Sequence record: OM634661.1
Reading direction: 5' to 3' (one strand)
DNA: 64,000 bases
A program made the position numbers and the translations under genes. Positions 25,999 to 50,459 of the stretch are shown here, piece by piece (the first letter of the stretch is position 1; every line of letters begins with the position of its first letter). Below the pieces are notes generated by a model. It ran no database searches, was not told the origin of the DNA, and worked only from the letters and a program-made list of their open reading frames with translations.

Positions 25999-26721
25999 AT
26001 GGCAAGAACAGTAGGTTACAATTACGGTCCAAATAAAAGCGTAGAGTATCAAAGATTTAATAGTGATTATTTTGAAGGTACTGATATTAGAATTTACTTT
26101 GGAGACATTTGGATTGATGAAGTAACAAGCTTGCAATATATGATGCAAGAAAACGTTGCACCGATCTTTGGATATGCCTCTTATACATGGGATAAAGTAG
26201 CTCGTGGAAGTAGACAGGTTCAAGGAAGCTTTCGAATCAATTTTAAAGAAAGTTACTATTTACATTCTGTTATGGAGAGGTTAAGTTCTAAAATAGATAA
26301 AGGTGCTTCAAGCAAAAGCTCTATCTTCAACAAATCTAATTTCAAAAAAGGACTTAATATTGAACACTTAATGGGTAATAGTAAATCATCTTCTTTTGAG
26401 AGTGTAGCAGATGAATTCGAGAAGTCATTTTGGGGAGAATCTTCTCAGTTTAAATCTAAAACAAATAATAGAGGAAAGAATAGTTACTTCTCTCCTGACA
26501 ATACTCAAAAGAATTTAGCAGAACATGGTTTCAATATACTTATCACATATGGTCCTTATAATGAAAGTGGAGGAAAAAGTACTGATGTTACTGCGGACAC
26601 AATTATTGGCGTTCAGCTAACAAGTGTAGGGAAAGTAATATCAGAAGAAAATGGAGCAGTGCAAGAAGAATACCAGTTTATCGCAAAAGATATTAGCGGT
26701 AACGTAAATAAATTAGCATAA
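25999..26721 (+). CDS. Tail tube paralogue 3 (divergent, probable tube initiator)
   Basis: YFEGTDIRIYFGD...LQYMMQENVAPIFGY...RGSRQVQGSFRINF resembles the tube motif. Confidence 0.6.
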   Translation: MARTVGYNYGPNKSVEYQRFNSDYFEGTDIRIYFGDIWIDEVTSLQYMMQENVAPIFGYASYTWDKVARGSRQVQGSFRINFKESYYLHSVMERLSSKIDKGASSKSSIFNKSNFKKGLNIEHLMGNSKSSSFESVADEFEKSFWGESSQFKSKTNNRGKNSYFSPDNTQKNLAEHGFNILITYGPYNESGGKSTDVTADTIIGVQLTSVGKVISEENGAVQEEYQFIAKDISGNVNKLA

Positions 26722-26742: not shown

Positions 26743-27222
26743 ATGGCGACAAAAAAAACTAAACAAACAGAAGAAGTATTGGAAGTACAAGAGGTAGATC
26801 AAGAAGTAGAAGTAAACGAAGATGTTTACCAAGAGGAAGAAGGATTGAATCCTGAGACAGATCCAGAAATGTTTGATGCAAATGGTAAGGAACTTTTATT
26901 TCCAAATGGACCAACTGTAGAACAAGTAGAAGAATGGAAGTCCCTTTATGAAGGAGAAGTATTCTTAACTGACTTTGATGGTACAAATATTTTCTTGTGG
27001 AGACCAATTACTCGTGCTGAACTAAGAAGTATTCGAAGCATCCAAGGTAAAGTTGATGAGTTCATGCGTGAAGAAAAGATCGTAGAAAAAGTTCTTTTAT
27101 ATCCAGAAGGATTATCAGCTCTAGCATTTAGAGAAATGAAAGGCGGCATTCCAAGTTATCTTTCTCAGTTAGTAATGGAGAAATCAGGTTATGTTGCTAA
27201 TACGGATGCACTAAAACTTTAA
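26743..27222 (+). CDS. Tail assembly chaperone 1
   Basis: Between tube and tape-measure genes; EWKSLYEGEVFLTDFDG...FLWRPITRAE. Confidence 0.65.
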   Translation: MATKKTKQTEEVLEVQEVDQEVEVNEDVYQEEEGLNPETDPEMFDANGKELLFPNGPTVEQVEEWKSLYEGEVFLTDFDGTNIFLWRPITRAELRSIRSIQGKVDEFMREEKIVEKVLLYPEGLSALAFREMKGGIPSYLSQLVMEKSGYVANTDALKL

Positions 27223-27297: not shown

Positions 27298-27804
27298 GTG
27301 GATACTAGAGAAAAAATCGCTGAATGGGAAATTCAGTATGATAAAGTATTTTACACAGACTTCGATGGTCAAGTTTTTATATGGAGAAGACTTACAAGGG
27401 CAGAGTATAAGATGCTTGCTAAAGTTTATTCTGATGAGATGGAGCGAAATGAACAGCTGTGTATACTATGTGTATTAGATCCTGTACTAACATTGGATGA
27501 CATGGATGGAATCTCTGGTGGTATTCCAGATAGATTGGCAGAAGAGATTTTAAAAGGATCTCACTTTGCTGCAACAGATGAAGAAATTAAGTTTTTAGAC
27601 TATACATATAATCAAGAAATGGAAGTCTTTGATAACCAAGTAAACTTAACAATCAAAGAAGCATTCCAAGATATGACTTTAAAAGAAATAGAAGACTTAA
27701 CAATAGAAAAAAGTATTGAATATTATGCAAAGGCAAAATGGATACTTTCTACTTTCAGAAATATCTCTTTTGAATCGGTTAGTGAACAAGACCCAATGAT
27801 ATGA
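27298..27804 (+). CDS. Tail assembly chaperone 2 (paralogue of chaperone 1)
   Basis: EWEIQYDKVFYTDFDG.VFIWRRLTRAE matches chaperone 1. Confidence 0.62.
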   Translation: MDTREKIAEWEIQYDKVFYTDFDGQVFIWRRLTRAEYKMLAKVYSDEMERNEQLCILCVLDPVLTLDDMDGISGGIPDRLAEEILKGSHFAATDEEIKFLDYTYNQEMEVFDNQVNLTIKEAFQDMTLKEIEDLTIEKSIEYYAKAKWILSTFRNISFESVSEQDPMI

Positions 27805-27825: not shown

Positions 27826-30800
27826 ATGGCAGGAAGTGAGTATGAACAATATGTAAATAGTCGTAAAGAAGATGAATCCTCTTCTGGTCTTGGCAATGCC
27901 ATTAAAGTTGGAGCGTTAATAGGTGCTGGGGCATTAGGTTACAGATATAGAAGAGAATTAGGTAGTGGGATTAGAACTCTAGGCGCTGGAGCTATGAGTG
28001 TAACAAACAGAGGTGTTGCAAGATTAGCAAGAAGTGAAACATTAAAAGATCGAATCTCACAAACAGGATCTTTCTTAAAAGCAATGGATCACGCTTTAGA
28101 TATGAAATCTCCTGTCTTCCATCTTCAAAACAGGCAGCGATTCAATAATCGTTTTGACGACTCTATGAGAAGAAGCCTGACAGAACTTGAAAAAAGAAAA
28201 CAAGGTGTTATGCGAAGAACGCCTACTCAAATTGAACAATCATTAGATACTCTCAGACATAATAGAAAAATGGGAGACTTTATGACTGAAAGGGCATTAA
28301 GGTTTAATGCTTCTATGGATGCATTGAATAAAAAAATGCCAGACAGAATGCAAGGCGGTCTTAGAGATATTCTCAACAATATGTCTGATGACTTCTTTAA
28401 TGATCCGTCTAAAGGTAAGATAAGAGGTCTCTTAGATTCTTATTCTCCTGAAAACGCAAAGAAAAATAACTTTGCTTTCAATATACCTATCAAGTCAGAT
28501 TCAGAAAAGAGTCAGTTTATTGATGAGATGTTTGAAGTTCTTGATACATTCAGGGACACAAAGGCTCTTAGAAAAGAAGATGTAAAAGCTTCTAAGAAGA
28601 AAATGAGAGACAATATGTATGACGGATTTATGCGTCAACATAAAAAAGAAGACACCTTCTTTACCAAGATGATGGAGAAGCAAGGGTGGAAGCAAGCCAC
28701 TGTTGAAGATCTATTAATGCATAAGACAGGCGGCAAGATGGACAGTGGATCTATCAGGCTTCCAAAGAAAGATGGTTCTCATTTCGAAGCAAGAATGAAC
28801 AGTAAACTAAGCAAATTGATGAAGCTAGATCCTAAAGTAGGGGATCTGATTGCTGATCCAAATCTGTATGTAAACCCTAGAGGGGAAATGCTAGACCTCA
28901 GAAAAGCAGCTGAAACAACATGGAAAGGTCTTGCTGGGTTCAGGGATAATTTCCAAATTCCATTCTTACGATTTAACCCACTAGATTTAATGCACTTCAC
29001 ATCATTCCAAGCAGTTAAGGAAGCACCTCAAACATACTTTATGCGAAGAGGTACGATTGATGTTAAGACAGGTATTAGCAAAAACATAGAAACTGTTAGA
29101 CATCCTATGGCTCATAACCAAGATGCAAAGGTTGGACCATTAGGAAAAGAATATGTCTACATGAGTGGAAATGTCTATGATGTAGGAAGCGGGGATCTTG
29201 TTGAGACAGGTAAGTATCTAGCTTCTGGTCGTTTCGGTATGTATCCTCGTGCTTTATCTGGAATGGCAAACTTACATAGACAAGATTATAGAGATAGAGG
29301 ATTCTTAGGCAAGCTATTTGATGTAGGTAAACAAGAGAATGAAGCAGTATGGTCAAGAATGGCAAGTACTGTTACGAAGTTTAAAGACGAGAATTGGGAA
29401 CGTAATTACAAAACCCTGATTGCAAGCGGAAAGACAGAAGAAGCTTATAAGAACGTATATGCAATGCTTGAACAGCATACAACCCCTATGAGTGATGACA
29501 CAATATCTCATATCTCTTCTCAAGTTAAGAAGGCATATGGAAAGTTAGATATAGATATTGAAAATATGAAGTCACCTGAAGAGGTAATGACAACTTTAGG
29601 TAAGCTAAATGAAGCAACCATGCTTCCTAACTCTGGAGTTGTTCAGAATAAAGAATTAAGCTTACAGATCAATCAGTTCTGGGCGCAGTATAGAAATAAT
29701 CCAACAGAGTTTATGAAGAACCAGAGAATCAAGACTGATCATATGCCATATGTACCAGAAGCACTATCAGCTCTTGATATGCACGAAACAAATATGATCG
29801 ACAAACTAGATGACGTAAAGAGACTTATTCATCAACATGCAATTGCACAGGTTGAATTTGCAAACTCAAGTTCATCAAAAGTAACGGTTGGATCTTTAGT
29901 AAGAGAAGGTATTCGAAATGGACAGTTAGAAACAAATGCAATGTCTGAAGTAAGAGGATTAGATGTTCTTACTTCTATGAGATCTTATTGGGACGATGTG
30001 TATAAAAATGGTCCTCTTGAAAAGAATGCAGCGCTTGATCAATTTGCAAACACTGTAATGGATGAATCAAAACCATTCGTTCATGCACTTGATCAAACCA
30101 TTAAAGAACAGACTCCTTGGTACTCAATGGGTACAGGAGACTCACCTCCTCAATACTTTGGCTATGTTGGATATCAAACAATGGATAAAGCCAAAGGTGC
30201 TAAGTGGATGCTTGAAAACTTTAACAAGCAATATCAAAATGGAGAGTCTCCACTTAAAGCTGGTGTAAATTCATTAATGGGAGTATTAGGTCAGCCATTT
30301 GCTGGTCGTAAAAATATTCAAGATGTCACAACAGCAACCCTTCCATTCTATTACTTTGCAGAACGTCTAGATAACGCTATTTCTCAAGCAGGTCTTGGTT
30401 TATCTCAACAAAACAGGGGATCAATGCAGAGCATCTTACTGAATCAATTTGGAAGACGAATCATACTTCCTTATGTTGCTTATAAGCAAGCACAGTATCT
30501 TGATGATATGACAGGTGATGTTGTAAGTGACAAGCTTGGAGAAACTTATGCGAATATGCATGAGGATGTTGGAAGGATTAAAGAGATATTCGGACTGAAT
30601 AAAATCGGTGAAGATATTGCTTCTATACTTCCTGGTATTGAACAATTGAAAGAAATCACACCTATTAAAATGTTTAACTTTGCGACAATGGGTGCTTTCT
30701 TTGATAATAGGTCTGGTGAAGAAATCAGAGAGTATTATGAAGATGGGGAAGATCCTATTAGGAAAGGTCGTTTCTGGGGTATTGGATCAGGTACACCTTG

Positions 30801-33800
30801 GCAGGGCGGAAAGATAGATCGTTTTGAACCAAACTGGTACAGAAAGATGAAGTCTGATTACCAATACACAGATACGATGTATGGAAGCTCTTCAGAGTAT
30901 TGGGCAAACCACTGGATGCCTACATTAACACATCCATTTGCTCCACTCAAACATTTCTTACTAGATCCTAACCATTGGGCGAACAAGCACAAAGATGACA
31001 GACCTTATCCAGTCACTGGTGGAATTACAGAGCTTGAAAGTATTCCTTTAGTCGGTCCTTTATTAAATGCAACAGCAGGAAGAATTATTAATCCGACAAG
31101 AGTTGATCCAAGACTCGAAAAGAGTCATAGGGAATACTTAAAAGAAGTCAATGAACATATCAAGTCTCAATATGACCAAGCAACATCTGGCGGCTCACTT
31201 CAATTCATGCCAGCTGGTGGATATGAAATTATTGATGGAAATCTTGGTGGAGGCGAAGCTGGAAGCGGAGAAGGATATGGATACGGAGATGGCAGCGGGA
31301 CTGGAACTGGTGGAGGAGATGGCACACCTGTTGTTACCTCTGACGATATTGGTGGAGGTAGAGGTTCAACTGGTGCTTCTGGTGATTTAAGAGCAAGTCT
31401 TGCCATTATGAACAAAGCTTATTCTGAAAATGGAGGACCAGCACTAGGCTCTGGAGGAAGTCCTATTAGATCAATTACTGGACTAAATGACTTGAGAGAT
31501 CCTGATATGGTATCTGATTTAAAAGATATTGGACAGATTACAGATGCATCAGGAATTGCACGAGATGCTTTCTATAGCCTAAGTGAGGTTGCTGGTATCT
31601 ATGGTTTCTCTGTTAAGGCAGCCACTGGATTTGAAGAGGGTGGAAGAGGAACAACACTTGAAAATGCATCAAGAATGACAAGCTATGCAAGAGCATGGTG
31701 GGATCTTGAAATGGGCGGTATGGGTGGACAGCTATCAGAGATTGGTAGACGTTATGTTCCTCGTGACCCAAATAAAAGATACTACAATCCAATAAGAAAC
31801 CAAATGCCAGACTGGATAGACAAAATTGTCCAGTATAAACTCTTTTAATTGCTGGGAACCCCTTAGAGCCATTAACACCACAACGTAGCTGGTGACAGCA
31901 AGCGTGATGGTTTAAAAAGATAATGGATTGGGCAATCAGCAGCTTGACTTAATTTAATTCCCATGTAATGATATGGTAAAGTACTTCGTATGTGAAAAAG
32001 GAGGAAATACTATGGATTACAGAATAAAAGATATGAGAAATAAGAAATATGGAAGGCTTACTGCTTTGAGGTATATAGAAACCAGAGCAGGTGGAGCATA
32101 CTGGATGTTTAAATGTGACTGCGGAAATGAGAAGATCATTAACGGCTCAACAGTAAGATGCGGTAAAGTGAGTTCATGTGGTTGTCTTGCTAAAGAAGTT
32201 TTTTCTAAAAAGATCACTAAGCATGGAATGGCAAATACAAGGACATATAATATATGGGTCGGTATAAAACAGAGATGTTTAAATCCAAAGTCATCTGCGT
32301 ATGAAAACTATGGAGCTAAAGGAATAACAATTTGTGAAGAATGGATGGATTTTGAAAAGTTCTTTGCAGATATGGGTGAAGCACCTGAAGGGTTCACTAT
32401 TGAAAGAATAGATAATGAACTCGGTTATTCAAAAGTAAATTGCAAATGGGCAAATCGCTCAGAGCAAAATATAAATAAATCATACAAAAACAACACTACT
32501 GGTATGAAAAACATATCTTACAATAAAAGAGATGATGATTACTCCGTTGGTATTTGCAGAAATAAAAAGAGATATAGAAAGAACTTCAAAAATCTCGAAG
32601 ATGCAATCAAATGGAGAGACTCTCTCTTAGAGGAATTAAATAGTTGAGTTCAACGACTAGAGAAAGGGAAGGTCTTGAAAAAGGCAAACCGAGTATCGTA
32701 CAGCCAAGTGGTGTCCACCTTTCGTAATAAGAAAGAATTGCTTATAAAAAGCATAGGGCTTAAATGGAAAAAGAGAGGGCTAGATATTCTAGCTATGATA
32801 TAGTCTAGTCTACATGGAAAGCATGTAGCAGTTCATAAGAGAACGGCAACGAAGTAACGACTCGTTGTGAATGTAACGGCCAGGAGTAGAATACTTTACT
32901 GATTTCCAACATGGTGATCCTTTTGTAAAAGTAGCAAAGGGTGAAATGAGACTCCCAGGAGAAGCATATGAAACCCTAAACAAATTACATCCTGATGCAT
33001 TTGGAGAGTATGGCGCATTTGATAGATTTAAAATATTAGCAGATGTTGCTCCTTATAGTAGTCAATATAAATTCTACAAGGGCGTTGTCTCACAAATGAA
33101 CCAAGAAGGTCTCCTTGATGAGTCAATGCAAAAGCAATACAAGAAAGTAAGAGATCAAGTATCAGCTAAAAAAGATAAATATAACTTCTATAATAGAAGA
33201 TTTGACAATGCAGATATTTATCAAGAAGAAGTAACAATCACAAAAATTATAGATCAAAACACATTTTTGACAAAAGAACATCCAAATAATCCAATTAAAT
33301 TAGCGGGCGTTAGTATTAAAGCTGATGATGAAGAAACACAAGCATGGTTGAGTCAGTATATCTATGAAGGTGCTACAGTTAAAGTAGGATTAGATTCTGA
33401 TCCTTTATATAGAGTCAGAGATGACATGATGAATACAATGAGAGCTGTTGTATATGCAGGTGAAAGATCAGAGGGTATGCCTTTCTACATGTCAGAAAAA
33501 GGGCAGAACTTAAACTATATGCTTGCCAATAGATCTTCTGGTGGATTCATGGGTATTGGTGGAGAAAAAACTGTATCTGTTAAAGACGATGGTAGCGCAA
33601 CTTCTACTCAAGCCTTATATAGTAACGATCAAATCACAGTAGGTAAGATATGGGAGTACTTAACTCATGACATTCTTCCACAAGCACCAATTGTAGGAAC
33701 AGTGGCTGATAAGTTCTTACAGATCAGAAGTCCACTTGAAGAATATAAGAGAACTCAGATTTACGGTAAGGCATGGAAACCTTGGGAAGAACCAATTAGC

Positions 33801-34979
33801 GGATGGGTAGAACCAATGCTTGATACAATCAGAGAGAGACATCCTTTAGTGGCAGCAGCAGAAGGTTATGGAATCGGATGGTTGTTTGGAAGAAAAGGAA
33901 GAGGTAAGTATTATGGCAAATGGGTCGGAGCAATTATTGGTGGAGGATTAAGTGCTTCTAGGGTATTCGGTGAAGCGATCAGTTCCATGACTCCAGGCAA
34001 AAGCGGATATGATGATACATGGATGCCAGAGAGAAGAAGAAAAGAACGAGAGATTAATGAGTATTTTGATAGATTAAAATACATGAAGTTCAAAGGTCTC
34101 TATGAGAAGACAAGGCAAGAAGCATTAAAGCAAGAAGGCATTGATATTGAAAAAGTTATCGGTGATGGAGCAAATAAAGGAAAGCAAAATAAGCAAGAGA
34201 GAAGATTTGCTGATAGCGTAAAAAAATGGCTTTCCATTAGCAAAAAGATAGGTTATGGTGATGAAGAACAAATAAAATCACAATTAAGTGAAATCAGAGA
34301 TAGAATGAAAATCATAGATGAAGACAGACCTAATGTTGAAATTGGTCCGTTAGCAATGCTTGCTTTAAGATACAAAGCGGAATATGAGTCAACTCTTTAC
34401 GGAGCAGATCCAAATGGAGACATGACAAAAATATTCAGAGCATTACCTTCTAAAGATAGAGAGTTCTTCACTGAGTTCATGAAGGCTGCACCTGGAGAAA
34501 GAGAAGAAATCTTACGACTTGTTCCTAAAGATCAAAGAAGATTCTACCAAGCAAAATGGGGATTGGACACAGATGAACCTGAAAGCTTAGGATCTTACTT
34601 CTCAGACCACTACTTACCTGATGCAAATTGGGAAGGGTGGAAGCCAAATATTGATCTAGAAAGTATTAAATTGAAAGTTGTTAAAAATGAAGCACTTGAA
34701 TTAACAGAGTTCGGATTATGGGGCGATGATGAAAAAAGAGCAATGGAATCTGGTGTAGATAGTATTGATATAGATAGACCAACATTAGGTTCTAGAATTG
34801 ATGTAGGAAGAATTGAAAATATCCTAAGAGGCTCTGGTTTAAAAGACGTATCTGTATCCATGAACGTTTCAAGTGGTCAATCAGAAAGTAAAGTAGATAT
34901 TGGTATGAATATACTTAGAGATAGAACAGAAGAGCTTGCAAGTGAGATTAAGGAAAATATATCTAGTATATTCTCTTAA
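27826..34979 (+). CDS. Tape-measure-like protein, two exons (27826-31817 and 32879-34979), 2030 aa after splicing
   Basis: Joining TGG AT|G CCA gives NQMPDW-M-PGVEYFTDFQHGDPF in frame with the 677-aa ORF. Follows the chaperones; helical; hydrophobic segment near the C-terminus. Confidence 0.8.
31818..32878 (+). mobile_element. Group I intron (1061 nt) carrying a homing endonuclease
   Basis: P1 ACTGGAT/GTCCAGT with U31817-G31828 wobble; P element AATTGCTGGGAA; Q element AATCAGCAG; R element GTTCAACGACTAG; S element ATGATATAGTCT; P9 CTACATG/CATGTAG; terminal G at 32878. Confidence 0.93.
32012..32647 (+). CDS. Intron-encoded HNH homing endonuclease with AP2-like C-terminal domain
   Basis: ATG 32012 after AAGGAGG; CDCG...SCGC; WVGIKQRCLNP...TIERIDNELGYSKVNCKW; NNTTGMKNISY...FKNLEDAIKWR. 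Confidence 0.88.
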   Translation: MDYRIKDMRNKKYGRLTALRYIETRAGGAYWMFKCDCGNEKIINGSTVRCGKVSSCGCLAKEVFSKKITKHGMANTRTYNIWVGIKQRCLNPKSSAYENYGAKGITICEEWMDFEKFFADMGEAPEGFTIERIDNELGYSKVNCKWANRSEQNINKSYKNNTTGMKNISYNKRDDDYSVGICRNKKRYRKNFKNLEDAIKWRDSLLEELNS

Positions 34980-35002
34980 ACTATAATAGAAGGTGAAGGA
35001 AT

Positions 35003-38000
35003 ATGGACAAAAACAATCTTGTACAAAGATATGGCGGTGTCTCAGGCGATATAGTCTGGGATAGCCGCTCTCCTTCTAATTTCTCGAACACAAATAGTGC
35101 AGAAAGAAATGAAGGAGCACAGACTGCTGCAAAAGCGCTTAATGAATTAGATTACAATTCAAGTGCATATAAAAACTCATTAGGTATCTGGAGTCAAGTG
35201 AATCCAGCTAACCCTTTCCAAAATAATGGACAACAAGCCATTCAGGGATTAATGAATATGAAGGAAGGTTCTGATGTCTTTGTTTATGATACAGAGATAC
35301 TAGGAACAGCACCAATGCATAGAAAAAGAAATAGTGTCGATTTCTACACTCCTACAGAAATTGCAATACAGCATACGAAGTTTATTAATGGAAAGTTGCA
35401 AACAGTAGAAAATAGCAACCGATCTCTTCTTATTCAACCTACAACAGATGTGTACAACAAATTAGATGATCTTATTAGGCAAGCAGCAAAAGGCAGATGG
35501 GTTGGTATGACAGATGACCAGCGCAGAACCCTATCGGATTTGACTCTGTATTCAGGTGATGCATCAGAGTTATTTGACGTACAAAATGTTCATGGACGAA
35601 AGATTGTTACTGTTAAAACACAGAACAGAAAAGTTCATCCTTTACAGGGAAGTGTTCTTTCATCTTCTAAAAATATTGCGAGAATGCAACAAGGACTAAA
35701 AAACTTAATGGAGTTTGGAACAGCACCTAAAGACATGGCATGGGAATTAAATAGATTTATGCAAGGTACAACAAATGCAATGTTTGCAGGTTACAACGTT
35801 CATAACTTTGATCAACCTATGATGCTTGATTATCTAAAGAATACTGTAGGTAAGTCATTAGGTAAAGACAGCGTAGCTCAAAGATCATTAGATAAACTCT
35901 ATACAGCTATGTCAGCAACACAAGTAGATGCATTCTCTGCTATTAAGACATTATACAAAGATCCTTTTAGTCGATTTGGCGCTAGAACAACACTTGAAAG
36001 AATGGATGAATTGATTAATGGAAGTAAAAAGAGAGATGGGTCTCGTATCGCTCACTTTGGTCTTTCTGATGCAAAGGTAACAGTAGATACCTTTAATAGT
36101 ATATTAGCAGATAATAATGTTTCAAAAATGATCTCTTCTGGAGGTAAAGCAAGAATCCCAGGATACGGAACATGGACTTCTAAGAATATTGAAGTAGGAG
36201 ATTTATTATTCGGTAAAGCAGGTCTTAATAGTCATGATTATGACGGTGTATACAAAAGAAGAGGCGGCGTATTAGAGCCAGCTTACAATATTAAAACAAA
36301 CAATATCTATAGAAATACAACATATGAAGTAAAGAACTTCTTTGATGGTGTTGAAATTGATGGGAAGAAAATGTTTGGGGTTCAATTATACAACCAAAAT
36401 GATGATCTGCATCATACTATTTTTAGAGATAATATGGGTGAACTTCAAAAAGCGATTCATGGATCTTTAGAGCCAGCTAACAACAAGACGGATGCTATGA
36501 GAAGAACAGCTTCAAGACTTCAAAACGAAGATAGAGCACTAAGAAGATGGAGAAAAATGTTCTCTACAGAATCTGGCGGCGGTATGGATTTAGCAACTAG
36601 ACTTTATAACGCACTTGATATTGAAAGAGATGTTCGTAAGATAGCTGCTCAAGAAGGATTAAAAGACGAGAAGCTAATCAAACAACAGATTGACCAAATG
36701 ATTTTAAAGAACAATGAATGGAATACAGATGAATTTGTTCGAGACTACCACACAATGAAGGGTCGATTAAAGCATGAAGAAAGCTATGTAAGAAGCTTTA
36801 TGAACAAAGTACAGTCTAGTGAAATTGGTGGAGATACACCTTCAGCCAAAAGAGCACAGAATCTTGCAATGGCAAACTTCGGAAAGCTTCTTGATCAAGA
36901 GTTTGGTGTGAATGAGTACAAGAGAAAGTTACCAGCTGGAAGCAGAGCCTTACCAATCAACATGAATGGTGAAACTCAGTACTTAAATATGAATGGTGTA
37001 GAAGGATTAAAGAGACAAATGTATGGATCTCTTTATAAAGGTCATGTATCAAAACCAAATCCAAGTATCGTTAAGCAGAGATACAAAGAGCTTCTTGGAG
37101 AATTAAAAACAACCAATGCAATTAGTGCAAAGAAATATGAAGAAGTACTAGGTGCTTTGGATCATATAAGAAGTGGAGATTCCCTAGACAACTTATTAAC
37201 AGAGCTTTCAAACGAAGTCATGAATGAAAGAGACAGGAACTCTAAGCTTGGTCTTTCTCATATACCAGCTGAAAATCCAACTGGTGTAAACAAAACAAGT
37301 GAAAGACACAGGAATGTGTCAAAAGCTCTGAAGTCTGGTGAAATGGAAAAAATCATGGGTAGAGCTATTAACTCTGTAGATGCTTACAATATGCAGTGGG
37401 ATGGCAAGACACCAGTTCGTTTCTTAGGAAAAGAAGTAGAAGAAATGATGGATATCCATGACAAAGCAATTGGTAATATACTAAGCGACTCTGGTATTAA
37501 TAAAGATGCTCGTATCGGATTTGAAAATGCCAAAAACTCTAGATCGTCTTTAACAAAATTAGCACAAGCATTTGTGAATAATGGAATGCATGTTCAGTTT
37601 AGATATAACGAAGTAAGTAAAGGTTTAGTTATGGCACTTGCTTCACAAAAAGTTTCTGAATCTGTATTAGATGGATCTCTAAATGATTTAATGAAGAATA
37701 ATAATGTAGCGACAGTAAACCTTCCTAGAATGAATGAAGATGGAACAATTACACTAGGATCTCAGAACAGAGTAGCAAGACTTACAGCTCAAAGAAGTAA
37801 AGATGGGAGCTATCAGGTTGTCACAGCATTTGATGAAGTTATTCAATCATTAATGAGAGCAGCTCCTTTTGCTAAAGATCAACTTGAAATGGCAAGTGCA
37901 ACAGGCAAGAAGAATGGAATGCTTCGTATTGATAGCACATTGAATAGAAGAGCACGACTTGCGATGCAGAATCTTTCCATGAATAACAAAAAGATGAACA

Positions 38001-42307: not shown

Positions 42308-42334
42308 TCGTGATAGTATACAGGAGGAAAGACT

Positions 42335-45300
42335 ATGCAAACTATTCAAACTCAGATTAGATCAATTAGAAAAGAATCAAGTGAAGCGGTCTGGAGAATT
42401 TCTTATCTAGACCCTTCGCTCCAGTCTTATGTTGAAGTTTCTATGGGAGAAGGCGGAGATGTTAGAATAGGACCTCGATTATCAGAGGTCTTATCTGATA
42501 TCGAATTTCAAGCGAAGAGTTCTTATCCTATCAATGCAAATTGGATGGAAGATGATCCAGACAATTTATTCTCCGTAAAAAGCTTTAATGATATCGCTGT
42601 TTCTATTGAGATGGAAGTATCAACATATAAGGCTTATAGAAACAAGCAACGTATTCAATTAAAAAGAGAAATGTCTATAGAAGAAAGTGTTCCTTATTCA
42701 GAAAATGAATTCGGAGAAGAAGAAGATGCGATTGAAACACTTTACATACCAGAAGAAAAAGATACGAATATCAAACAAAACAACTTAAGAGATTCTAGTT
42801 ACTTCCTTGTTGGTAAGGTTGGTCGTGTTATTGATGGAGATACAATTGATCTTATTGTTGAAAGAAAAGGAAGTAAGGTTAAGGGTTCTGAATTTGAAAA
42901 AGGAAAGACAGTTAGAATCAGATTCTATGCAACACAAACACCTGAAACAAACAAAGCAGGGGATTATGACGAAAAGACAAACGCTGCTTATGCAAAGAAA
43001 TATAAGATTACAACAAAAGATGCTTATAAGATTGCAGACGAGGCCAAATCATTTGTTCAAAAACAATTGGGTGGTGCTGGTCTTATTGTCGTAGATTTAG
43101 ATACTGATAAAGATGGTAGGCTTAAAACAACATATGGTCGATATGTCGGTATGGTCTATAAGACAAGAGAAACAAATGCTGAGAATGTCTTTAGAAATCA
43201 AGGGAGCATTGCGAATAATATCAACAAAACAATTTTGATAACAGAATCAAAGAAAGTTCCAGGCACTCCATTAGGAACAATTAATAGTGAATTTGTATCA
43301 AAAGAATTTAGCCGTTTTGATGGAATGGTATGGGAAGCAGAACTTGGTCTCAACGCAACAAAGACAAAGCATGTTGGATCTGTAGGAAGCCTGATTGATC
43401 AAAAAGATCCTGATGGTGATAGTAAAAGATTAAATATGAAGACAGTGAATATTAAGTACGAAGAGGCTCCTAGTAACTTAATTGACTACATAGAACCTAA
43501 TGATGATAGAGCTGAAAGTAGAGCAAGTGATGCTTTATCAGAATACAGAGTGAGAATTGGTGACGTTGATCTAGTTATTCCTCCTCTATCTATTAACTTA
43601 AACAGAGCTTCTAATTTGCAAAAAATTAAAACGTTGCGAAGCAAATCTTCTATTATTACAAAAGTAGGTAGCAGTACAGAACACATTACGCTTCAATTAT
43701 ATTTTCATGATCTTGATTCTATTAACGGTAAAAGAATCAAAAGACATGCAAAGCTAAAAGACCAATACTATTACATGGATGGATTAAGACCATTGATTGC
43801 ACAGTTTAAAAAAGCTCCATTCCTTCCTATTGATAATGAATATATAAATGAAACGCTAGGTATTCACAACGTAGCTCTTGTCAATTTAACAGTATCAACT
43901 GTACCAGGATTTCCTCATTCATTGTCAGCGACTCTTGTTCTTGCAAAATTTGAACATGAAGCTTTCATGCCACAAGTTGAATTCTTAGGAAATGCTATCA
44001 ATTATCCTTTACTAAGATGGTATTACCAAGAAGCAATGGTTGATAACGGAAGTCCATACCGAACATACTTGTCTCCAATTGAGGGAGAACTAACAAACGA
44101 CTTTACGTTCTCTATTGCTGATGAAGATCAGCTTGCAGAAAGAAAAATGGCAATACAAAAGATTCGAATGATGGAAAATCCATTAACATATAAAGAAAAG
44201 ATTGATAATAAGGAAACAGAAATTGGTCGCTTAATTTCTGATGGTAAAAAGATAGAAGTGGCCTTGAAGCAATGGGAGCGATATCTAAATGTTAAATCAA
44301 AAGGATTACTTCCTAAAGTAGATGAGATGGGATATATTGAGCCAAATGATACATTAAGTCCTAAATCCCCAAACCCTAAAAGCCGACAAGCTTGGAAAGA
44401 GATCTATGAGAGCGAAGCTATTGCTTCTAAATCTAATGCAAGATTCTATCCAGTAGAGAGTCAAGAATTCCAAACAACAATGATGCCTGAACAATATACA
44501 AGAGAAGAATATAGAAGCTATTTTGGAGATCATAAAGCTGAAGGGTTTATCATGATCGGTCTTGATGGGGCGGCAAATAAAGAAGCTCTTCCAAGTTTCT
44601 ATCAGGATGTTGGTGGTAATAAAGACACGACAAATTCACCTTTATACTATATTCCAATGAGTCAGCCATCTTATGCACAACAAATCTTATCAAGAGCAAA
44701 GAATGCAGAGTTAAGCGCAAAAAATTATATTGATGAGTACACAGAGACTCAAAAGATCATTAGAGCAACAGAAGGAGAACTTGATCTTGTTGATTACCCG
44801 ATTGATGGATTGATTCTAACAAATATTGATGTCATGTATGAGAACTCTTTCAGTACAATGCATATACAAATGAATGATGCACCTACTAATCAATATCTTG
44901 GATCACAAGATCCTTATGTACAAGTAAAGTTTGAAGCAACTCAAGATGCTGTTAGACAACTAAAGGATTTATTGCAAACAGTAGATCGCTACTCTAAAGA
45001 ATACAGGCTTGGAATTACATCTGGATTTATGGGATTAGATAATCAATTAACAAATCTATTTGGAGTTAGAACTGTTCTTGCAGAAAATGTTGGTATTAAT
45101 ACTGTACCAGGATTCCCTGGCAGATTCCAAGTAGAGATGACACTTTGTGGATTCAATAAGACTCAGAAAAGAACAGAAGAACTTGAAGGTATATCACCTA
45201 TCTATGGTAATTCTTCAAAGGCAGATAGACATGCAAAGAATTACAATGCAGCAGTAGATAATGCCATTGTTGAAATGAAGATGAGAGACCTTGAAGTTTA

Positions 45301-48300
45301 TCCAGATTTAGAACTTCCAACTTATGATGAGTTAAATGCGGCACTTCCTTACATTTCATCTGGTGCTAAAAAGATTCCTAATTACTTAGGAAACAAGTAT
45401 GTTGACCCTGACTTCTACATCGCAACGCCGAATACATTAAGAGAAATGGTCAAAGAGATGAGAGAGAAAGAACATAAGATGCAGCTTAAAGACATGATGG
45501 GTGTACAAATGTACACAAGTAATCAGATGTCAGGACCATTAGATGGAGATGCTTCGATGTGGAGTCTCTTAAATAATGTAGATGAATCAGTGCCAGGTAT
45601 TAAAGCGGGATTCAATTGGGGCGGCGAAACAAGTTCGTCTGGTGGATCTTCTAAGGATGGCGGTGTATTCAAAAGCAAAGAGGTTCAAAAGTATGTAGAG
45701 GATAAGAAGAAGTTGAAAGAACCACCTACTTTGCAAGAATGGTCTAAATGGGGATATGGAACAACACCTAGTCAGTATCTTGCATGGAAAGAGAATCCTC
45801 ATCCAGAAGAATGGCAGGTATACAACCTAATATATCAAATGGTTGATACTAGATGGTTAAAAGCTGGTCTAGTCTTTAATGATAAAAAGAAAAGTACAAA
45901 GGCAATTGAAAAGGTCACATACTCTAAGAGAGATGATCTTTATAAGGTGAATTGGAATTACTTAGCTGATCAAGATCCAAGTCAGATTAAGAATGGTAAG
46001 AAAGTTAAGATCGGAAAGTTATCCAAGCAGGATTTTAGATCTACTAATAGCAAAGTAACAAGAGAGCGTATTGCAAACTTGATTAAAGCCATCTTCCATG
46101 TGAGAAGTGGATGGAAGCAATTCTACAGTAATGGATCTCCAATTTTCAGAGGTGGAGAGAACTCTGCTGGTATCGGAGGTGTTCCTCTAGGAGCAGAAGC
46201 TGAAGGTGTTTCAGAAGCTAAAAGACTTCTATGGGATTGGAAATATAATATTACATTTGCAGTAGATCATCTATTTAAGATGTATAAACAAGCAAATAAC
46301 AGTAAGGATCTCAATAAGAAATCTAGGCCTTGGGATTACATGATTCAAGGATATGCAACAGGAAACACAGATGGAGAATTGAAAAATTCATTTGTTGATG
46401 CAGTATATGCAAAATTTGATAGACAGTACAATGATGTAAAGGCGAAATATGCAACACCATCAAGCCCAATGAACTTGAAAGCATTCCAATATAAAAACGG
46501 CTTAAGTGATCATGACATTGCTGTTATCAAGGGAGATAAGGGAGCTATCATTGATGAGCTTCTATCCATTGGATATAGAGAAGTGAAAAGCACAACTCTT
46601 ATTATCTTTAAAGAGTATTATTCTAAAGCAGAAACAAAAAAGATTTTGGAAAAGAAAAGTGCAACAAAGCTGAAGAAGATACTAGATGATTACAGGCTAG
46701 ATAAGTATGGAAGCGGAGAAAGTTACAAGGAACCAGCCAATTCATATTTTGATCCAAACTTTAGTAATATTTCACAAGCTAAAGGGGCAAATGCTGATGA
46801 AGATGAGTATTACAGATATCAGAAATATATCGAAGCTGGAGACTACATTGACAATGCAGATGGTAATAGACTCGTAAATACAGATGATCCTCAAGAATTA
46901 TTTAGAGAGATGTTTGTAGATATGCTTGATTATGATCATAGATTTAGATTGCTTCGTGCATTCCCTACTTTCCAAATGTTTATTATCGAAGAAGGAAGAT
47001 GGATGGCAAACTATAGACTGTGGGATAACCTTTATGGATTTAATGCAATACAATCTATAGATGTACATAAAAATAGAAAGATTGCCGCTGACACAGCGAT
47101 TATCACTATGACAAATGTATATAACAATCTAAGAGCACGATCTATGGATACAAGCTACAGCGAGTGGGATTACAGCTTCTGGGATAACCTTGTCTTAGGA
47201 AATCCAAACGAAAAATTATTAGAAGCTAGAAAAGAATTACTGAGTAACATGATGCTAGAGCCAGGTGCTAGAATCCATTTAAGAATGGGATATGGATCAA
47301 GCGTACCAAATTTACCTGTTGTCTTTAACGGAACAATAACAGAGATGGACACAGAAGAGCTTGTAACAGTTGTTGCTCAAGGTGACGGTATTGAATTAAC
47401 AAACGTGATCTCTGGAGATCCTGATGATAAGAACAGAAGCTGGATTGGAACTATTGAAGAACCAAGAGACTTGATCTGTAACTTAATGACAAGTAAAGGT
47501 AACTGGTTCAAAGATGTAATCAACTGGACAAGTGGAAATACATTCTTCAAAGACAATCCATTAGGTGTACAACACTTTGGAATGCCTGGTAAAACACCAC
47601 CAGCAAACTTTGTACCATTCAATACTGATTATGGGGAAGCTGCTCAGAACATTTATTCTTCAAATGGAATACCTACATTTAGCCAATGGACTTATGAAAA
47701 TGGGGAGTCAATTCCATTCTCATTTGAAGGAGGAAACCCTTGGAGATGGATACAACCAGGTGATGAAGATAACATACTTCTTAGCTTCTATCTGAATACA
47801 ATCTGGGATATTACACAAACGATTGCATATTGTTCACCTGATTACGTTGCAGCCGTTCATCCATTTGAAACAAGAAGTACATTGTTCTTTGGTAAACCAT
47901 ACTGGAAGATGGCACATAGATATAGTAGCTCATACGAGTATGATTCTGGATCAAAACAATGGCTCAGAACTTTAAACACAGAGCATAGAAAACCATATAT
48001 GCAATTCCATTACTTAGATGGATATATGGACATTATCTCTAACAGAATCAAAGCAACTTCAGAAAATATGTATACAAACGTCATTGTGAACTATGACGGA
48101 AAACAAACAGAAACAATTTATGCTGATTACGACATTCATTTTGCAAAACAAAAGACAACTGTCATTGATGCGAAGATTGTTTCAAGAGCAAAAGGGATTG
48201 ACTTCTGGACATCTGAGAAACAGGCATTGTATTACGGAGCAAGTGCTCTTAGAGATTACATGAAAGATATGTATCAAGGAGAGCTAATTGTACTAGGAAC

Positions 48301-49315
48301 ACCAACATTGAAGCCTCATGACATGTGCTTCATGTCTGATGAGATGTCTGATATGAATGGAAACATTCAAGTAAAAGCAGTCACTCACTCTTTCTCATTA
48401 GAAACAGGTTTTGTTTCTTCTGTACAGCCAGATGCAGTAGTTGTTACAGATGATATGGCAATCTTATCTCAATCATCTTGGTTGCATTCATTTGGCACTG
48501 GATTACTAGGATCTATCGTTGGTACAAGATACGCATCTAGATCTTTAAGAAAAATTGTATCAAGTGCAATTGCTCAAAAATTAATCAAGACAGGTGGAAA
48601 GGGATCTAAAAAAGCGATAGAGAAATCATTACTAAAAGGACTGTCGTCAATTCCTGGAAACGATAAAGATGTGAAAGCCTTTAAGACGGCAATGGCAGAG
48701 TATATAAGGGCAGGAGAAGGAACAAGTGCTAAGTCACAAGCATTAGACAAAGCAACAAAAGCTCAATCGAGACTTGAAAGTAAAGTAGCTGAGTGGAAGC
48801 AAAGCGGGTCATTTGACAAGAAGAAGCTTGGTAAGAAAGGTATTAGTCAAGCAAAGATTGAGGTAAAACGAGCCACAGCAGTATCAAAACAAATCCTCAA
48901 TGCAACTAAGGGTGGTAAGAAAGCTATGAAGACAATCAGCCTTATTGGAAGAGGAGTGGCTGCATCAAACCCTATCGGCTTACTTGTCACAGCTGTTGCT
49001 ACATGGGCTGCTGAAACAATCGCTGAAAAATATAGAAGAAAGAAAGCATCTATGCAAGCATGTTTGATTCTTCCTTTGAAATATCAAGGTAGAGAATTCA
49101 CAGCTGGCATCAATGGACACAAAGGACTTGTTGTTGGAGACAACCCAGGCCGTATAGATAACTTCTTATCAGGAGCAGGATTTGATGGTAAGAATGATGG
49201 CGGACTAGATGAATGGGTAATGGACTTGTGGAATTGGGCAACAGATGCAGAAGATAAGAAATATAGCGTAAGTGAAGAAGACTTAATGTCTGGAGATTAT
49301 AAATTAAATCAATAA
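42335..49315 (+). CDS. Giant baseplate-hub protein with N-terminal thermonuclease (SNase) domain and a degenerate lysozyme-like domain
   Basis: RVIDGDTI...RIRFYATQTPE...YGRYVGMVY; hub-like LEPGARIHLRMGYG...FNGTITE and VKAVTHSFS; hydrophobic C-terminal helices. Confidence 0.72.
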   Translation: MQTIQTQIRSIRKESSEAVWRISYLDPSLQSYVEVSMGEGGDVRIGPRLSEVLSDIEFQAKSSYPINANWMEDDPDNLFSVKSFNDIAVSIEMEVSTYKAYRNKQRIQLKREMSIEESVPYSENEFGEEEDAIETLYIPEEKDTNIKQNNLRDSSYFLVGKVGRVIDGDTIDLIVERKGSKVKGSEFEKGKTVRIRFYATQTPETNKAGDYDEKTNAAYAKKYKITTKDAYKIADEAKSFVQKQLGGAGLIVVDLDTDKDGRLKTTYGRYVGMVYKTRETNAENVFRNQGSIANNINKTILITESKKVPGTPLGTINSEFVSKEFSRFDGMVWEAELGLNATKTKHVGSVGSLIDQKDPDGDSKRLNMKTVNIKYEEAPSNLIDYIEPNDDRAESRASDALSEYRVRIGDVDLVIPPLSINLNRASNLQKIKTLRSKSSIITKVGSSTEHITLQLYFHDLDSINGKRIKRHAKLKDQYYYMDGLRPLIAQFKKAPFLPIDNEYINETLGIHNVALVNLTVSTVPGFPHSLSATLVLAKFEHEAFMPQVEFLGNAINYPLLRWYYQEAMVDNGSPYRTYLSPIEGELTNDFTFSIADEDQLAERKMAIQKIRMMENPLTYKEKIDNKETEIGRLISDGKKIEVALKQWERYLNVKSKGLLPKVDEMGYIEPNDTLSPKSPNPKSRQAWKEIYESEAIASKSNARFYPVESQEFQTTMMPEQYTREEYRSYFGDHKAEGFIMIGLDGAANKEALPSFYQDVGGNKDTTNSPLYYIPMSQPSYAQQILSRAKNAELSAKNYIDEYTETQKIIRATEGELDLVDYPIDGLILTNIDVMYENSFSTMHIQMNDAPTNQYLGSQDPYVQVKFEATQDAVRQLKDLLQTVDRYSKEYRLGITSGFMGLDNQLTNLFGVRTVLAENVGINTVPGFPGRFQVEMTLCGFNKTQKRTEELEGISPIYGNSSKADRHAKNYNAAVDNAIVEMKMRDLEVYPDLELPTYDELNAALPYISSGAKKIPNYLGNKYVDPDFYIATPNTLREMVKEMREKEHKMQLKDMMGVQMYTSNQMSGPLDGDASMWSLLNNVDESVPGIKAGFNWGGETSSSGGSSKDGGVFKSKEVQKYVEDKKKLKEPPTLQEWSKWGYGTTPSQYLAWKENPHPEEWQVYNLIYQMVDTRWLKAGLVFNDKKKSTKAIEKVTYSKRDDLYKVNWNYLADQDPSQIKNGKKVKIGKLSKQDFRSTNSKVTRERIANLIKAIFHVRSGWKQFYSNGSPIFRGGENSAGIGGVPLGAEAEGVSEAKRLLWDWKYNITFAVDHLFKMYKQANNSKDLNKKSRPWDYMIQGYATGNTDGELKNSFVDAVYAKFDRQYNDVKAKYATPSSPMNLKAFQYKNGLSDHDIAVIKGDKGAIIDELLSIGYREVKSTTLIIFKEYYSKAETKKILEKKSATKLKKILDDYRLDKYGSGESYKEPANSYFDPNFSNISQAKGANADEDEYYRYQKYIEAGDYIDNADGNRLVNTDDPQELFREMFVDMLDYDHRFRLLRAFPTFQMFIIEEGRWMANYRLWDNLYGFNAIQSIDVHKNRKIAADTAIITMTNVYNNLRARSMDTSYSEWDYSFWDNLVLGNPNEKLLEARKELLSNMMLEPGARIHLRMGYGSSVPNLPVVFNGTITEMDTEELVTVVAQGDGIELTNVISGDPDDKNRSWIGTIEEPRDLICNLMTSKGNWFKDVINWTSGNTFFKDNPLGVQHFGMPGKTPPANFVPFNTDYGEAAQNIYSSNGIPTFSQWTYENGESIPFSFEGGNPWRWIQPGDEDNILLSFYLNTIWDITQTIAYCSPDYVAAVHPFETRSTLFFGKPYWKMAHRYSSSYEYDSGSKQWLRTLNTEHRKPYMQFHYLDGYMDIISNRIKATSENMYTNVIVNYDGKQTETIYADYDIHFAKQKTTVIDAKIVSRAKGIDFWTSEKQALYYGASALRDYMKDMYQGELIVLGTPTLKPHDMCFMSDEMSDMNGNIQVKAVTHSFSLETGFVSSVQPDAVVVTDDMAILSQSSWLHSFGTGLLGSIVGTRYASRSLRKIVSSAIAQKLIKTGGKGSKKAIEKSLLKGLSSIPGNDKDVKAFKTAMAEYIRAGEGTSAKSQALDKATKAQSRLESKVAEWKQSGSFDKKKLGKKGISQAKIEVKRATAVSKQILNATKGGKKAMKTISLIGRGVAASNPIGLLVTAVATWAAETIAEKYRRKKASMQACLILPLKYQGREFTAGINGHKGLVVGDNPGRIDNFLSGAGFDGKNDGGLDEWVMDLWNWATDAEDKKYSVSEEDLMSGDYKLNQ

Positions 49316-49328
49316 GGGATGTGGTTGT

Positions 49329-50459
49329 ATGGCTCGAAATGATAAGCAGGAAGCTTGGGAAAAGGGATATATAGATAATGTAGGGCAAATGAAACAAGCC
49401 TATGACTATCGACAAGACTTCCTTAAAGATTTTAGTCTTAACGGTGAGAAAAAGGAAGATGATCAAATTGGTGATGATTCTGGTTCTGGTGGCGGCGGTA
49501 GCGTCACCATTGGAACTAAATATGATGACGTTATTAACGAAGCTGGAAAGAAGTACGGTATCAATCCGTACTTCATAGCTTCAGTTATAAAACAAGAAAG
49601 TAACTTTAATCCTAGTGCAGGGTCTCATGCTGGTGCAAGAGGATTAATGCAATTAATGCCAGCCACTGCAAAAGCGTTAGGAGTATCTAATCCATCAGAT
49701 CCTAGACAGAATGTAATGGGAGGAACTAAATACCTAAAGCAAATGTTGCAAGCTCAAGGATGGAATCCTGTACTGGCATTAGCTGCGTATAATGCTGGGC
49801 CAGGTAACGTTCGTAAGTATGGAGGAGTTCCGCCATTTAAAGAGACTCAGCATTATGTTAAAGTTATTCCTCAAAACTTCAAGAATTATACAGGGGAAAC
49901 ATTAACAAGTAAGAATGTAAAATGGTCAGGAGACATGGCTAGTTCTGGAGGTAAGACCAGCTTTAGTGGATCTGGAAGTCAGATCACAATCAAAGGTGGA
50001 AGGATCTATATCCCTACAGGCATAGGTAGAAGTCAGTATGCAGCTAAGAGGAGATCAGAAGGAAGCTCAACAAATTGGGCAGCATGGAAGAAACTAGACT
50101 CTAAAAAGTTTAATCATAACGGACCTATGAAATCTGTGAATAAGTATGCACCTGATGCACATGCGGCTTTTAATTTACTATATGAAAAGCTTGGTAAAAA
50201 AACACTTCTAATCAACTCTGGTTTTAGAAATGGCGATCCAGCAATGCATGGAGCAGGATGTGCATTTGATATAGGATGTAGAGGAAAAAAAGATGCTTTG
50301 TTTGTAGCTGATACAGCTTGGTCTCTAGGATTTAGAGGAATAGGTGTTGGAGGTAATCTAGGAGGCGGAGCAGGATTTGTACACGTAGACATTGGTCCAG
50401 ATGGCGGAGGATGGAGTTATGGATATGGGAAGTATAGAGGCCCTAATAGCATGAGGTAG
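49329..50459 (+). CDS. Virion-associated lysin: lytic transglycosylase plus M15-type peptidase
   Basis: IKQESNF, GLMQLMP and AAYNAG (SLT domain); SGFR...MHGAGCAFDI...FVHVDIG (M15 zinc peptidase). Confidence 0.9.
   Translation: MARNDKQEAWEKGYIDNVGQMKQAYDYRQDFLKDFSLNGEKKEDDQIGDDSGSGGGGSVTIGTKYDDVINEAGKKYGINPYFIASVIKQESNFNPSAGSHAGARGLMQLMPATAKALGVSNPSDPRQNVMGGTKYLKQMLQAQGWNPVLALAAYNAGPGNVRKYGGVPPFKETQHYVKVIPQNFKNYTGETLTSKNVKWSGDMASSGGKTSFSGSGSQITIKGGRIYIPTGIGRSQYAAKRRSEGSSTNWAAWKKLDSKKFNHNGPMKSVNKYAPDAHAAFNLLYEKLGKKTLLINSGFRNGDPAMHGAGCAFDIGCRGKKDALFVADTAWSLGFRGIGVGGNLGGGAGFVHVDIGPDGGGWSYGYGKYRGPNSMR

Follow-up and report, generated by a model that had tools for sequence, protein, structure and literature searches.

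The subject of this study is a block of tail genes in Bacillus phage vB_BauM_KLEB27-3 (hereafter KLEB27-3; host Bacillus australimaris), whose genome of 216,671 bp is deposited as OM634661.1. The window that we analysed is a stretch of 64,000 nucleotides comprising bases 1-64000 of that record, and the 22.6-kb region at positions 27826-50459 matches the record at 100% identity. The block consists of a first gene that is annotated in two parts (gp031 + gp033, here called gene 1), the giant gene gp034, the hub gene gp035 and the lysin gene gp036. Our main finding concerns gp034, which, judged by its conserved residues and its predicted structure, holds a two-barrel RNA polymerase core of the cellular kind behind an exonuclease domain. 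Since gp034 sits in a conserved block together with nuclease- and wall-cutting proteins, the tail of this phage probably delivers its own transcription enzyme, something shown to date for a single long-tailed phage, P23-45 of Thermus. An initial annotation of the window had described these genes as an enzyme-loaded module for DNA entry; the conserved gene block is real and the observation mostly so, and the label of tape measure that was given to the first gene needs revision. Coordinates are window positions unless stated otherwise, and the features of the block and its two chaperonin genes all lie on the plus (+) strand.

An exonuclease and a two-barrel polymerase in one protein

The product of gp034 (35003..42307) has 2434 residues. 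An RNA polymerase plus an exonuclease had been proposed for this second gene, and both are present, the exonuclease coming first and the polymerase second. The single sequence gives no match in the PDB, and its match to Pfam RNA_pol_Rpb1_2 is weak (E = 0.003-0.015). An exhaustive HMMER search with residues 1235-2434 recovered 112 cluster representatives, none of them a known polymerase; 75 of these (clusters at 50% identity) are 2100-2760 residues long and are counted here as full-length members of the gp034 family.

Two regions within the polymerase core (residues ~1334-2267, 39002..41803) carry its conserved residues: a β-type barrel region with K1362 and R1370 (39053..39304), recognised by conservation and a weak profile match, and a β′-type catalytic barrel with R1893-x-P1895 and D1933-x-D-G-D1937 (40616..40858), recognised by conservation, Pfam and profile comparison with the PDB. 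The catalytic triad reads DYDGD at residues 1933-1937, and 72 of the 75 full-length relatives keep DxDGD at the corresponding site. Across a 30-row alignment with 16-45% identity, R1893, P1895, D1933, D1935, G1936, D1937 and K1362 are invariant in every row, and R1370, eight residues from K1362, is kept in 25. These positions correspond to the invariant set of two-barrel polymerases, which comprises Rpb1 R446, P448 and D479/481/483 as well as Rpb2 K979/K987 and D837 (Ruprich-Robert and Thuriaux, PMC2919709), down to the eight-residue spacing of K1362 and R1370, which equals that of Rpb2 K979/K987; the β-type barrel aspartate, the counterpart of Rpb2 D837, was not located in gp034.

Profile and fold comparisons point in the same direction. 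Searched against the PDB, the family profile finds Rpb1/β′ catalytic barrels, including the β′ chains of phiKZ and AR9 (E from 6e-4 to 8e-3), and its K1362 region matches a bacterial β subunit weakly (E = 0.63). The AlphaFold model of residues 1235-2434 has a predicted local distance difference test score (pLDDT) of 73, rising to ~80-90 in the core, and a predicted template modelling score (pTM) of 0.63. Foldseek returned 393 PDB matches to this core at E ≤ 1e-3, and the 50 PDB matches listed are all β′/Rpb1/Rpo1N chains of RNA polymerases, with AR9 β′ first. Overall, the best profile and fold matches are the AR9 non-virion β′ chain (7s01_d), phiKZ (7ogp) and bacterial or archaeal β′/Rpo1N chains; identity to β′ chains of the multisubunit type is 13-18% over ~250-400 aligned columns. 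Matches in the BFVD include phage and giant-virus RNA polymerase subunits, and the best after the homologue from the relative WH1 are an uncultured-siphovirus ‘minor tail protein’ (E = 1.7e-13) and then a protein of Acinetobacter phage vB_AbaM_ME3 (ME3; 1.3e-10). The first of these, A0A8S5SD80_1 of siphovirus ctnpt50, aligns over 828 columns, which hints at further tail-associated polymerases.

The N-terminal part of gp034 (residues ~90-372, 35270..36118) is, on profile and motif evidence, a DEDDh (DnaQ-like) 3′-5′ exonuclease. Here the family profile finds 9l8b in the PDB (E = 3.2e-7), as well as TREX1 and the PolC exonuclease, and the motifs follow in the expected order, with D96/E98 as Exo I, N265/D270 as Exo II and H351/D356 as Exo III, each of the six residues being kept in 29 of 29 full-length relatives. 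DEDDh exonucleases are the kind that proofreads for DNA polymerases. At the other end of the protein, a conserved C-terminal domain (41954..42304) starts with a Gly/Ala-rich hydrophobic segment (residues 2318-2336); no other stretch of the family is conserved as well as the last ~115 residues, where AlphaFold confidence is low.

gp034 is the only polymerase candidate in the KLEB27-3 genome: the annotation and a six-frame motif scan of all 216.7 kb found no other polymerase-like open reading frame (ORF). We also considered a second, YonO-like polymerase elsewhere in the genome and rejected it, as none is annotated and the 746-residue gp277 has no relevant match. The fusion of polymerase and exonuclease is without a described counterpart, and the polymerase family, which occurs in contractile-tailed phages, is itself undescribed. 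For a polymerase at this position in contractile-tailed phages we found no description in the literature searched, which left out most subscription journals, and the same search found no papers on KLEB27-3 or WH1.

Layout and conservation of the block

Six ORFs make up the block (27826-31848, 31973-32647, 32946-34979, 35003-42307, 42335-49315 and 49329-50459), encoding 1340, 224, 677, 2434, 2326 and 376 residues in that order. The extent and spacing first reported, about 22.6 kb and gaps of 13-27 nt, hold up well: the measured span is 22,634 bases, and the last four reading frames are separated by 23, 27 and 13 nt. The count of four single genes does not, given that the first gene is two ORF pieces (1340 + 677 residues) lying ~1.06 kb apart.

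Upstream of the block the genome runs from terminase, portal, protease and capsid genes through two sheath paralogues, three tube paralogues and two small genes; downstream follow baseplate wedge and fibre genes. The presence of sheath genes in this order identifies KLEB27-3 as a contractile-tailed jumbo phage. A crAss-like identity, prompted by the giant genes on one strand and the weak Rpb1 match, was dropped once the window proved to be a Bacillus myovirus record. At 20715-26721 the two sheath paralogues are gp023 and gp025, and the three tube-like genes gp026-gp028 follow in a row; the corresponding sets of WH1 and other relatives are similar. Immediately before gene 1 stands a two-gene tail assembly chaperonin, whose first half is gp029 (26743..27222; phrog_29362) and whose second is gp030 (27298..27804), at the position of the ‘tail chaperonin’ genes of WH1. 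BLASTP (9e-15) shows homology between the C-terminal domain of gp029 (residues 58-159) and the N-terminus of gp030, and a chaperonin pair of the same arrangement is formed by gp143/gp144 of 0305phi8-36 (PMC2147016). The records of KLEB27-3 and WH1 annotate gene 1 and the polymerase gene as structural, and KLEB27-3 has two sigma factors of its own for the host polymerase.

The same order was found in relatives. The chaperonin pair, gene 1 and the polymerase protein follow one another in 11 of 11 genomes or contigs inspected, the hub comes next in every inspected locus that reaches it, and the lysin comes next in all six that extend far enough. Among these are WH1, Edson, the loci L007, L008/L009, L010, L011, L015 and L016, and a contig of 246,926 bp from a Priestia assembly; in each of them the middle gene belongs to the gp034 family and carries DxDGD. 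The type of lysin varies, being an amidase in WH1, a glucosaminidase in L011, an M15 peptidase in L010 and an SLT+M15 protein in KLEB27-3. Both a gene 1 and a hub homologue appear to be present on 24 contigs, to judge by identical lengths of the longest contig for the two homologues. Assemblies under the names Priestia, Gottfriedia, Cytobacillus and Enterococcus contain whole contigs of phage size (~207-247 kb) with the block (the Priestia contig is GCA_042787905.1 JBHZOX010000006.1; proteins of this group are P0259, P0264 and P0164), and these could represent carried or co-cultured jumbo phages.

The lineage is that of 0305phi8-36-like jumbo contractile-tailed phages of Bacillota, with an outlier in Acinetobacter. 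In this outlier, ME3, the order is the same and the middle protein, ME3_36, has 1603 residues (L012 10485-15296). It matches the gp034 catalytic barrel weakly (domain E = 1.2e-4) and has the triad variant DHDQD. A predicted ME3 structure matches the gp034 model, at the 1.3e-10 given above. Taken together, the weak barrel match, the variant triad and the fold match suggest that the tail-module polymerase may extend to phages of Gram-negative hosts. A different state is seen in Moorella phage MTATph1 (OR602862.1, 176.6 kb), where a transposase gene interrupts the gp034-family gene at one point; all that can be recognised of the family there is the N-terminal part, exonuclease included, and the C-terminal domain, and no polymerase signature was found in that gene.

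Comparison with known systems

The closest comparison for the tail block itself is 0305phi8-36 (Thomas et al., 2007; Hardies et al., 2007, PMC2147016), whose ORF143-ORF148 block has the same order: a two-gene chaperonin (ORF143/144), ORF145, ORF146 (‘hypothetical tape measure protein’) and the hub ORF147. Gene 1 and gp035 have clear homologues in ORF145 and ORF147, respectively, whereas ORF146 is a non-homologous positional counterpart of gp034 and, unlike it, has no polymerase or exonuclease signature; neither DxDxD nor a profile match was found in it. Mass spectrometry has found both ORF145 and ORF146 in virions of 0305phi8-36. The polymerase of 0305phi8-36 is a separate YonO-like enzyme, orf99, encoded outside the structural region (PMC2147016). 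The two phages thus look complementary, one having its polymerase elsewhere and no signature in ORF146, the other having the signature in gp034 and no other polymerase gene.

The closest comparison for the polymerase is gp96 of Thermus phage P23-45, a 5002-residue tape measure protein with an N-terminal virion RNA polymerase that has been proposed to transcribe the first genes during DNA entry (Chaban et al., 2024, PMC10770324). Transcription-coupled genome entry had initially been thought not to be established for an architecture such as that of KLEB27-3; this overlooks the tape-measure-fused enzyme of P23-45. The polymerase of gp034 belongs to a different and undescribed family. Both proteins are giant products of the tail module, encoded next to tail-tip genes, with a single-chain two-barrel polymerase and DxDGD. 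They differ in several respects. The tail of P23-45 is non-contractile, whereas KLEB27-3 has sheath genes. The polymerase is N-terminal in gp96 and lies in the C-terminal half of gp034, following an exonuclease that has no counterpart in gp96. A second, non-virion polymerase is present in P23-45 but not in KLEB27-3, which does encode two sigma factors. Finally, gp96 is a tape measure protein, a role that for gp034 is putative, by position. When the gp034 family profile was aligned to residues 1-1200 of gp96 with hhalign, 53 columns around RxP...DxDGD were matched (probability 2.7%, E = 0.017), and we therefore consider the gp034 polymerase to be of a different family from gp96.

Other polymerases share single features with gp034. 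The enzymes of phiKZ, AR9 and cells, which provide its best matches, consist of several polypeptides, whereas gp034 has both barrels in one chain of 2434 residues. The crAss-like, YonO and QDE-1 enzymes are single-chain two-barrel polymerases. In the crAss-like (phi14:2 gp66) and N4 enzymes, polymerase domains are part of very large virion proteins with delivery to the host, as would also hold for gp034. The podovirus virion polymerases are stored in the head, and that of N4 is of the unrelated T7-like type. No crAss-like, N4, YonO or QDE-1 enzyme is among the 50 PDB fold matches listed, and crAss-like proteins appear weakly in the BFVD.

Gene 1 and its intron

Gene 1 (27826..34979), an orthologue of ORF145 of 0305phi8-36 with ~2030 residues after splicing, contains, by its sequence, a single insertion of the group I intron type that carries an HNH endonuclease gene, and it would be expressed only after the intron has been spliced out. 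Its two pieces align to residues 12-1329 and 1352-2025 of WH1 gp096, which is one uninterrupted protein of 2025 residues, at 42% and 63% identity respectively. In the insertion lies gp032 (31973..32647; annotated start 32012), which matches the HNH homing endonuclease family phrog_374 (E = 7e-66). Joining the predicted exons gives 2030 residues with no stop and a single alignment block to residues 12-2025 of gp096, with a U before the 5′ junction and a G at the intron end.

Homologues of gene 1 are mostly unsplit, with ~2000-2200 residues. Two metagenomic relatives (L015 and L016) share the layout, with a first piece of 1348 or 1506 residues, a 211-residue ORF, and a second piece of 672 or 640 residues. 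The Rfam Intron_gpI score is 19.6 bits for the insertion in KLEB27-3, below the gathering score of 50 bits; at the equivalent site it is 21.9 bits in L015 and 77.3 bits, above the threshold, in L016. gp032 shares 84% identity with its counterpart at this site in L015, against ~50% for the host gene, and such a difference is the mark of a mobile element. Recoded stops or a frameshift were considered and rejected in favour of an intron, because a homing endonuclease ORF lies inside, relatives share the insertion and one copy passes the Rfam threshold.

In two further homologues an intein takes the place of the intron (L010 597-7730 with Hint_2/Intein_splicing, and protein P0305 with PF14890), and homing elements seem to have targeted gene 1 repeatedly. 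Counting gene 1, the large terminase and DNA polymerase III alpha, the essential genes of KLEB27-3 contain at least three elements of the self-splicing or homing kind. The terminase (5296-8250; 984 residues) contains an intein with a LAGLIDADG homing endonuclease at residues ~69-458 (Pfam Intein_splicing 1.5e-16, LAGLIDADG_3 3.9e-12). The DNA polymerase III alpha gene, beyond the window at 146335-150705 of the record, is annotated as gp164 + gp166 with the HNH endonuclease gene gp165 between them, and this split looks like a second intron-type interruption.

Gene 1 matches no family in Pfam, NCBIfam or PHROGs, and its family profile finds no match in the PDB. An SNase-like remnant had been suggested in it, which is plausible. 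The AlphaFold model of the second piece (pLDDT 74.7) shows a β-barrel at gp033 residues ~88-225 (33207..33620), an OB-fold, followed by long helices. The top 35 Foldseek matches of this barrel in the PDB are all staphylococcal nuclease, with a target template modelling (TM) score of ~0.6 and marginal E-values (3e-3 to 2e-2). Sequence profiles give no match to the stretch. The alignment has no invariant arginine there, so the word remnant fits, and the domain is probably non-catalytic.

The hub and the lysin

gp035 (42335..49315; 2326 residues) is a baseplate hub protein, matching ORF147 of 0305phi8-36 (‘baseplate hub protein’) by tblastn over residues 390-2279 (4e-52), and also the hub of ME3 and Moorella CDS0032; it stands directly before the baseplate genes. 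As a single sequence it finds no match in the PDB. The nuclease domain that had been proposed for the hub is N-terminal (residues ~143-286, 42761..43192), and is supported by phrog_452 endonuclease (2e-8) and NCBIfam EcnA (2.8e-4); the Pfam SNase model scores 14.5 bits (E = 0.05), below its 21-bit cut-off. D167, G168, D169, T170, R196, E204 and R269 vary hardly or not at all; the relatives bear the name thermonuclease-family endonuclease, and PF00565 is assigned to two of them. The lysozyme-like relic that had also been suggested for gp035 was not found, nor was an SLT relic: Pfam, the profile search of the PDB and hhalign against the SLT/peptidase protein gp036 were all empty, and a relic of either kind was rejected.

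Distant members among the 76 relatives found for gp035 have M23, SLT, NlpC/P60, glucosaminidase or amidase domains instead of SNase. The hub of 0305phi8-36 has been described as a T4 gp27-like core that is ‘hyperplastic’, with exchangeable domains (Hardies et al., PMC2147016), and the varying domains of the gp035 relatives match this description. In 0305phi8-36 wall-degrading domains stand where gp035 has SNase, and no separate lysin gene follows the hub.

The tail-associated lysin gp036 (49329..50459; 376 residues) combines the two activities first assigned to it. Its SLT transglycosylase domain (residues 68-175, 49530-49853) is clear in Pfam (1.4e-30, 105.7 bits against a cut-off of 21.3), and its PDB matches include the corresponding domain from a phage tape measure protein (9b45). 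The M15/LAS-type peptidase (residues ~285-359, 50181-50405) is the weaker of the two assignments, resting on phrog_894 (1.5e-5) and on the Peptidase_M15_3 protein that occupies this position in L010, which BLASTP matches at 2e-9; Pfam gave no match.

A hydrophobic segment near the C-terminus, reported for the first three proteins, is present in each of them, rich in Gly/Ala and only moderately hydrophobic. In gp035 it covers residues 2208-2226 (48956..49012), with a Kyte-Doolittle value of 1.42 (family mean 1.40) and a median distance of 101 residues from the C-terminus in the family; in gp034 (41954-42010) the family mean is 1.33 and the median distance 104 residues. The segment of gene 1 departs from this pattern, with a value of 0.83 and 327 residues to the end. 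A C-terminal domain common to the three giant proteins was looked for by pairwise BLASTP, which found none.

Proposed delivery of the polymerase and alternative explanations

We suggest that the block encodes the tail lumen and hub, and that gp034 is built into the tail, delivered to the host and employed in transcribing early genes. Taken as a whole, we rate this reading as having a little better than an even chance of being correct. The products of gene 1, gp034, gp035 and gp036 would all be built into the tail. On contraction of the sheath, the hub and the lysin would cut the wall, and the gene 1 protein and gp034 would leave via the tube, ahead of the DNA or with it, their Gly/Ala-rich hydrophobic segments possibly helping them to exit. 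The gp034 polymerase would then transcribe the genes that enter first, the exonuclease would act on 3′ ends of DNA or RNA at entry, and the phage sigma factors would afterwards redirect the host polymerase. The virion location is given for the counterparts, as ORF145 and ORF146 are found in 0305phi8-36 virions; for KLEB27-3 we infer the place of gp034 in the tail, its exit through the tube and its part in early transcription, and the membrane insertion first proposed for the module is likewise putative. It is a reasonable extension, we think, of the mechanism published in 2024.

Several points weigh against this reading. (i) The literature searched contained no proteomic, structural or expression data on KLEB27-3, where the status of gp034 as a structural protein is annotation only. 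(ii) With two phage sigma factors, the whole programme could run on the host polymerase; they fit a hand-over to the host enzyme and, equally, complete reliance on it. (iii) A polymerase is unnecessary for the structural role of this position, since ORF146 has neither DxDxD nor a profile match. (iv) The last 16.7 kb of the genome contain no promoter-like repeated motif, only repeats resembling ribosome-binding sites. (v) A folded polymerase core of ~900 residues must be stored in, and pass through, a narrow tube. (vi) The hydrophobic segments are below the usual threshold for transmembrane segments. (vii) The specificity of the enzyme for nucleoside triphosphates or deoxynucleoside triphosphates cannot be read from the gp034 sequence.

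The alternative that survives best concerns the tape measure, and refines the above rather than replacing it. Here gp034 would itself be the tape measure, uniting ruler, exonuclease and polymerase in one polypeptide, and the gene 1 protein would be another lumen or hub-proximal protein; the P23-45 arrangement would then have arisen a second time, independently, in a contractile tail. We regard this alternative as a serious possibility, at about one chance in three. The initial annotation had taken gene 1 for the tape measure. However, the gene 1 family profile matches ORF145 of 0305phi8-36 along its length (E = 0), together with Moorella CDS0026 and ME3_35, whereas the published tape measure of 0305phi8-36 is ORF146. 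Given that gene 1 is the orthologue of ORF145 and that ORF146 precedes the hub, it is gp034 that corresponds by position to the published tape measure. Moreover, the gp034 family is fast-evolving except at its C-terminus, the same pattern that Hardies et al. described for ORF146 and its counterparts, and its length is tightly held at ~2400-2500 residues.

On the other side, at least 1200 of the 2434 residues of gp034 are globular enzyme domains, and gene 1, with a length held as tightly (~2000-2200 residues), is directly downstream of the chaperonin pair in KLEB27-3 and in its relatives. Tape measure genes usually come directly after the chaperonins. Length does not discriminate between the two proteins as the ruler, because both are shorter in ME3 and scale together there (1263 residues for the gene 1 homologue and 1603 for the middle protein). 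Gene 1 and gp034 are equally good candidates for the tail-length ruler, and for the 0305phi8-36 lineage the assignment of the tape measure is reopened.

Less favoured is the view that gp034 has a structural role in the tail and that its enzyme domains take no part in transcribing phage genes, the early ones being read by the host polymerase. The domains would then serve to degrade host or extracellular nucleic acid, to trim DNA ends, to counter defence, or as architecture. The two sigma factors, the want of a specific promoter motif in the last 16.7 kb and the fact that 0305phi8-36 manages without a polymerase signature at this position all speak for this view, as does the recurrence of nucleases in the block. 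Against it stands the strict invariance of the whole catalytic set across a family that has diverged to ~20% identity, which argues for a working polymerase active site, because a decaying relic would lose those residues first. We consider this explanation unlikely, at about one chance in five.

It is less probable still, and in our estimate clearly improbable, that the head, not the tail, stores the gene 1 protein and gp034 as ejection proteins like those of T7, N4 and crAss-like phages, and that their genes merely lie beside those of the tail. The known virion polymerases other than that of P23-45 are all head-packaged (discussion in PMC10770324), and a capsid accommodates folded enzyme domains more easily; however, the genes stand between the chaperonin pair and the hub in every relative, with the head genes upstream, and the conserved C-terminal domain of gp034, encoded beside the hub gene, fits a contact with the hub. 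Least probable of all, and in our view a distant outsider, is a virion-delivered polymerase that works on incoming DNA ends, by PolD-like synthesis or by priming or repair with 3′ trimming, rather than as a transcriptase; if true, a phage tail would for the first time be seen to carry a two-barrel machine that processes DNA ends.

Implications for virion polymerases

A virion RNA polymerase allows the phage programme to start without the host enzyme, and few such systems are known. A virion polymerase fused to a tape measure is already known from P23-45; delivery of gp034 by the tail would extend that idea to contractile-tailed jumbo phages, and to a polymerase family that is nearer to cellular β/β′ than the clade of YonO, crAss-like and P23-45 enzymes, which points to independent recruitment. 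The gp034 family is not rare, given its 75 full-length clusters and its presence on contigs of 200-250 kb and in Priestia, Cytobacillus, Gottfriedia and Enterococcus assemblies. With these sequences as a defined set, one can ask how a tail tube stores a folded polymerase and how the enzyme leaves it.

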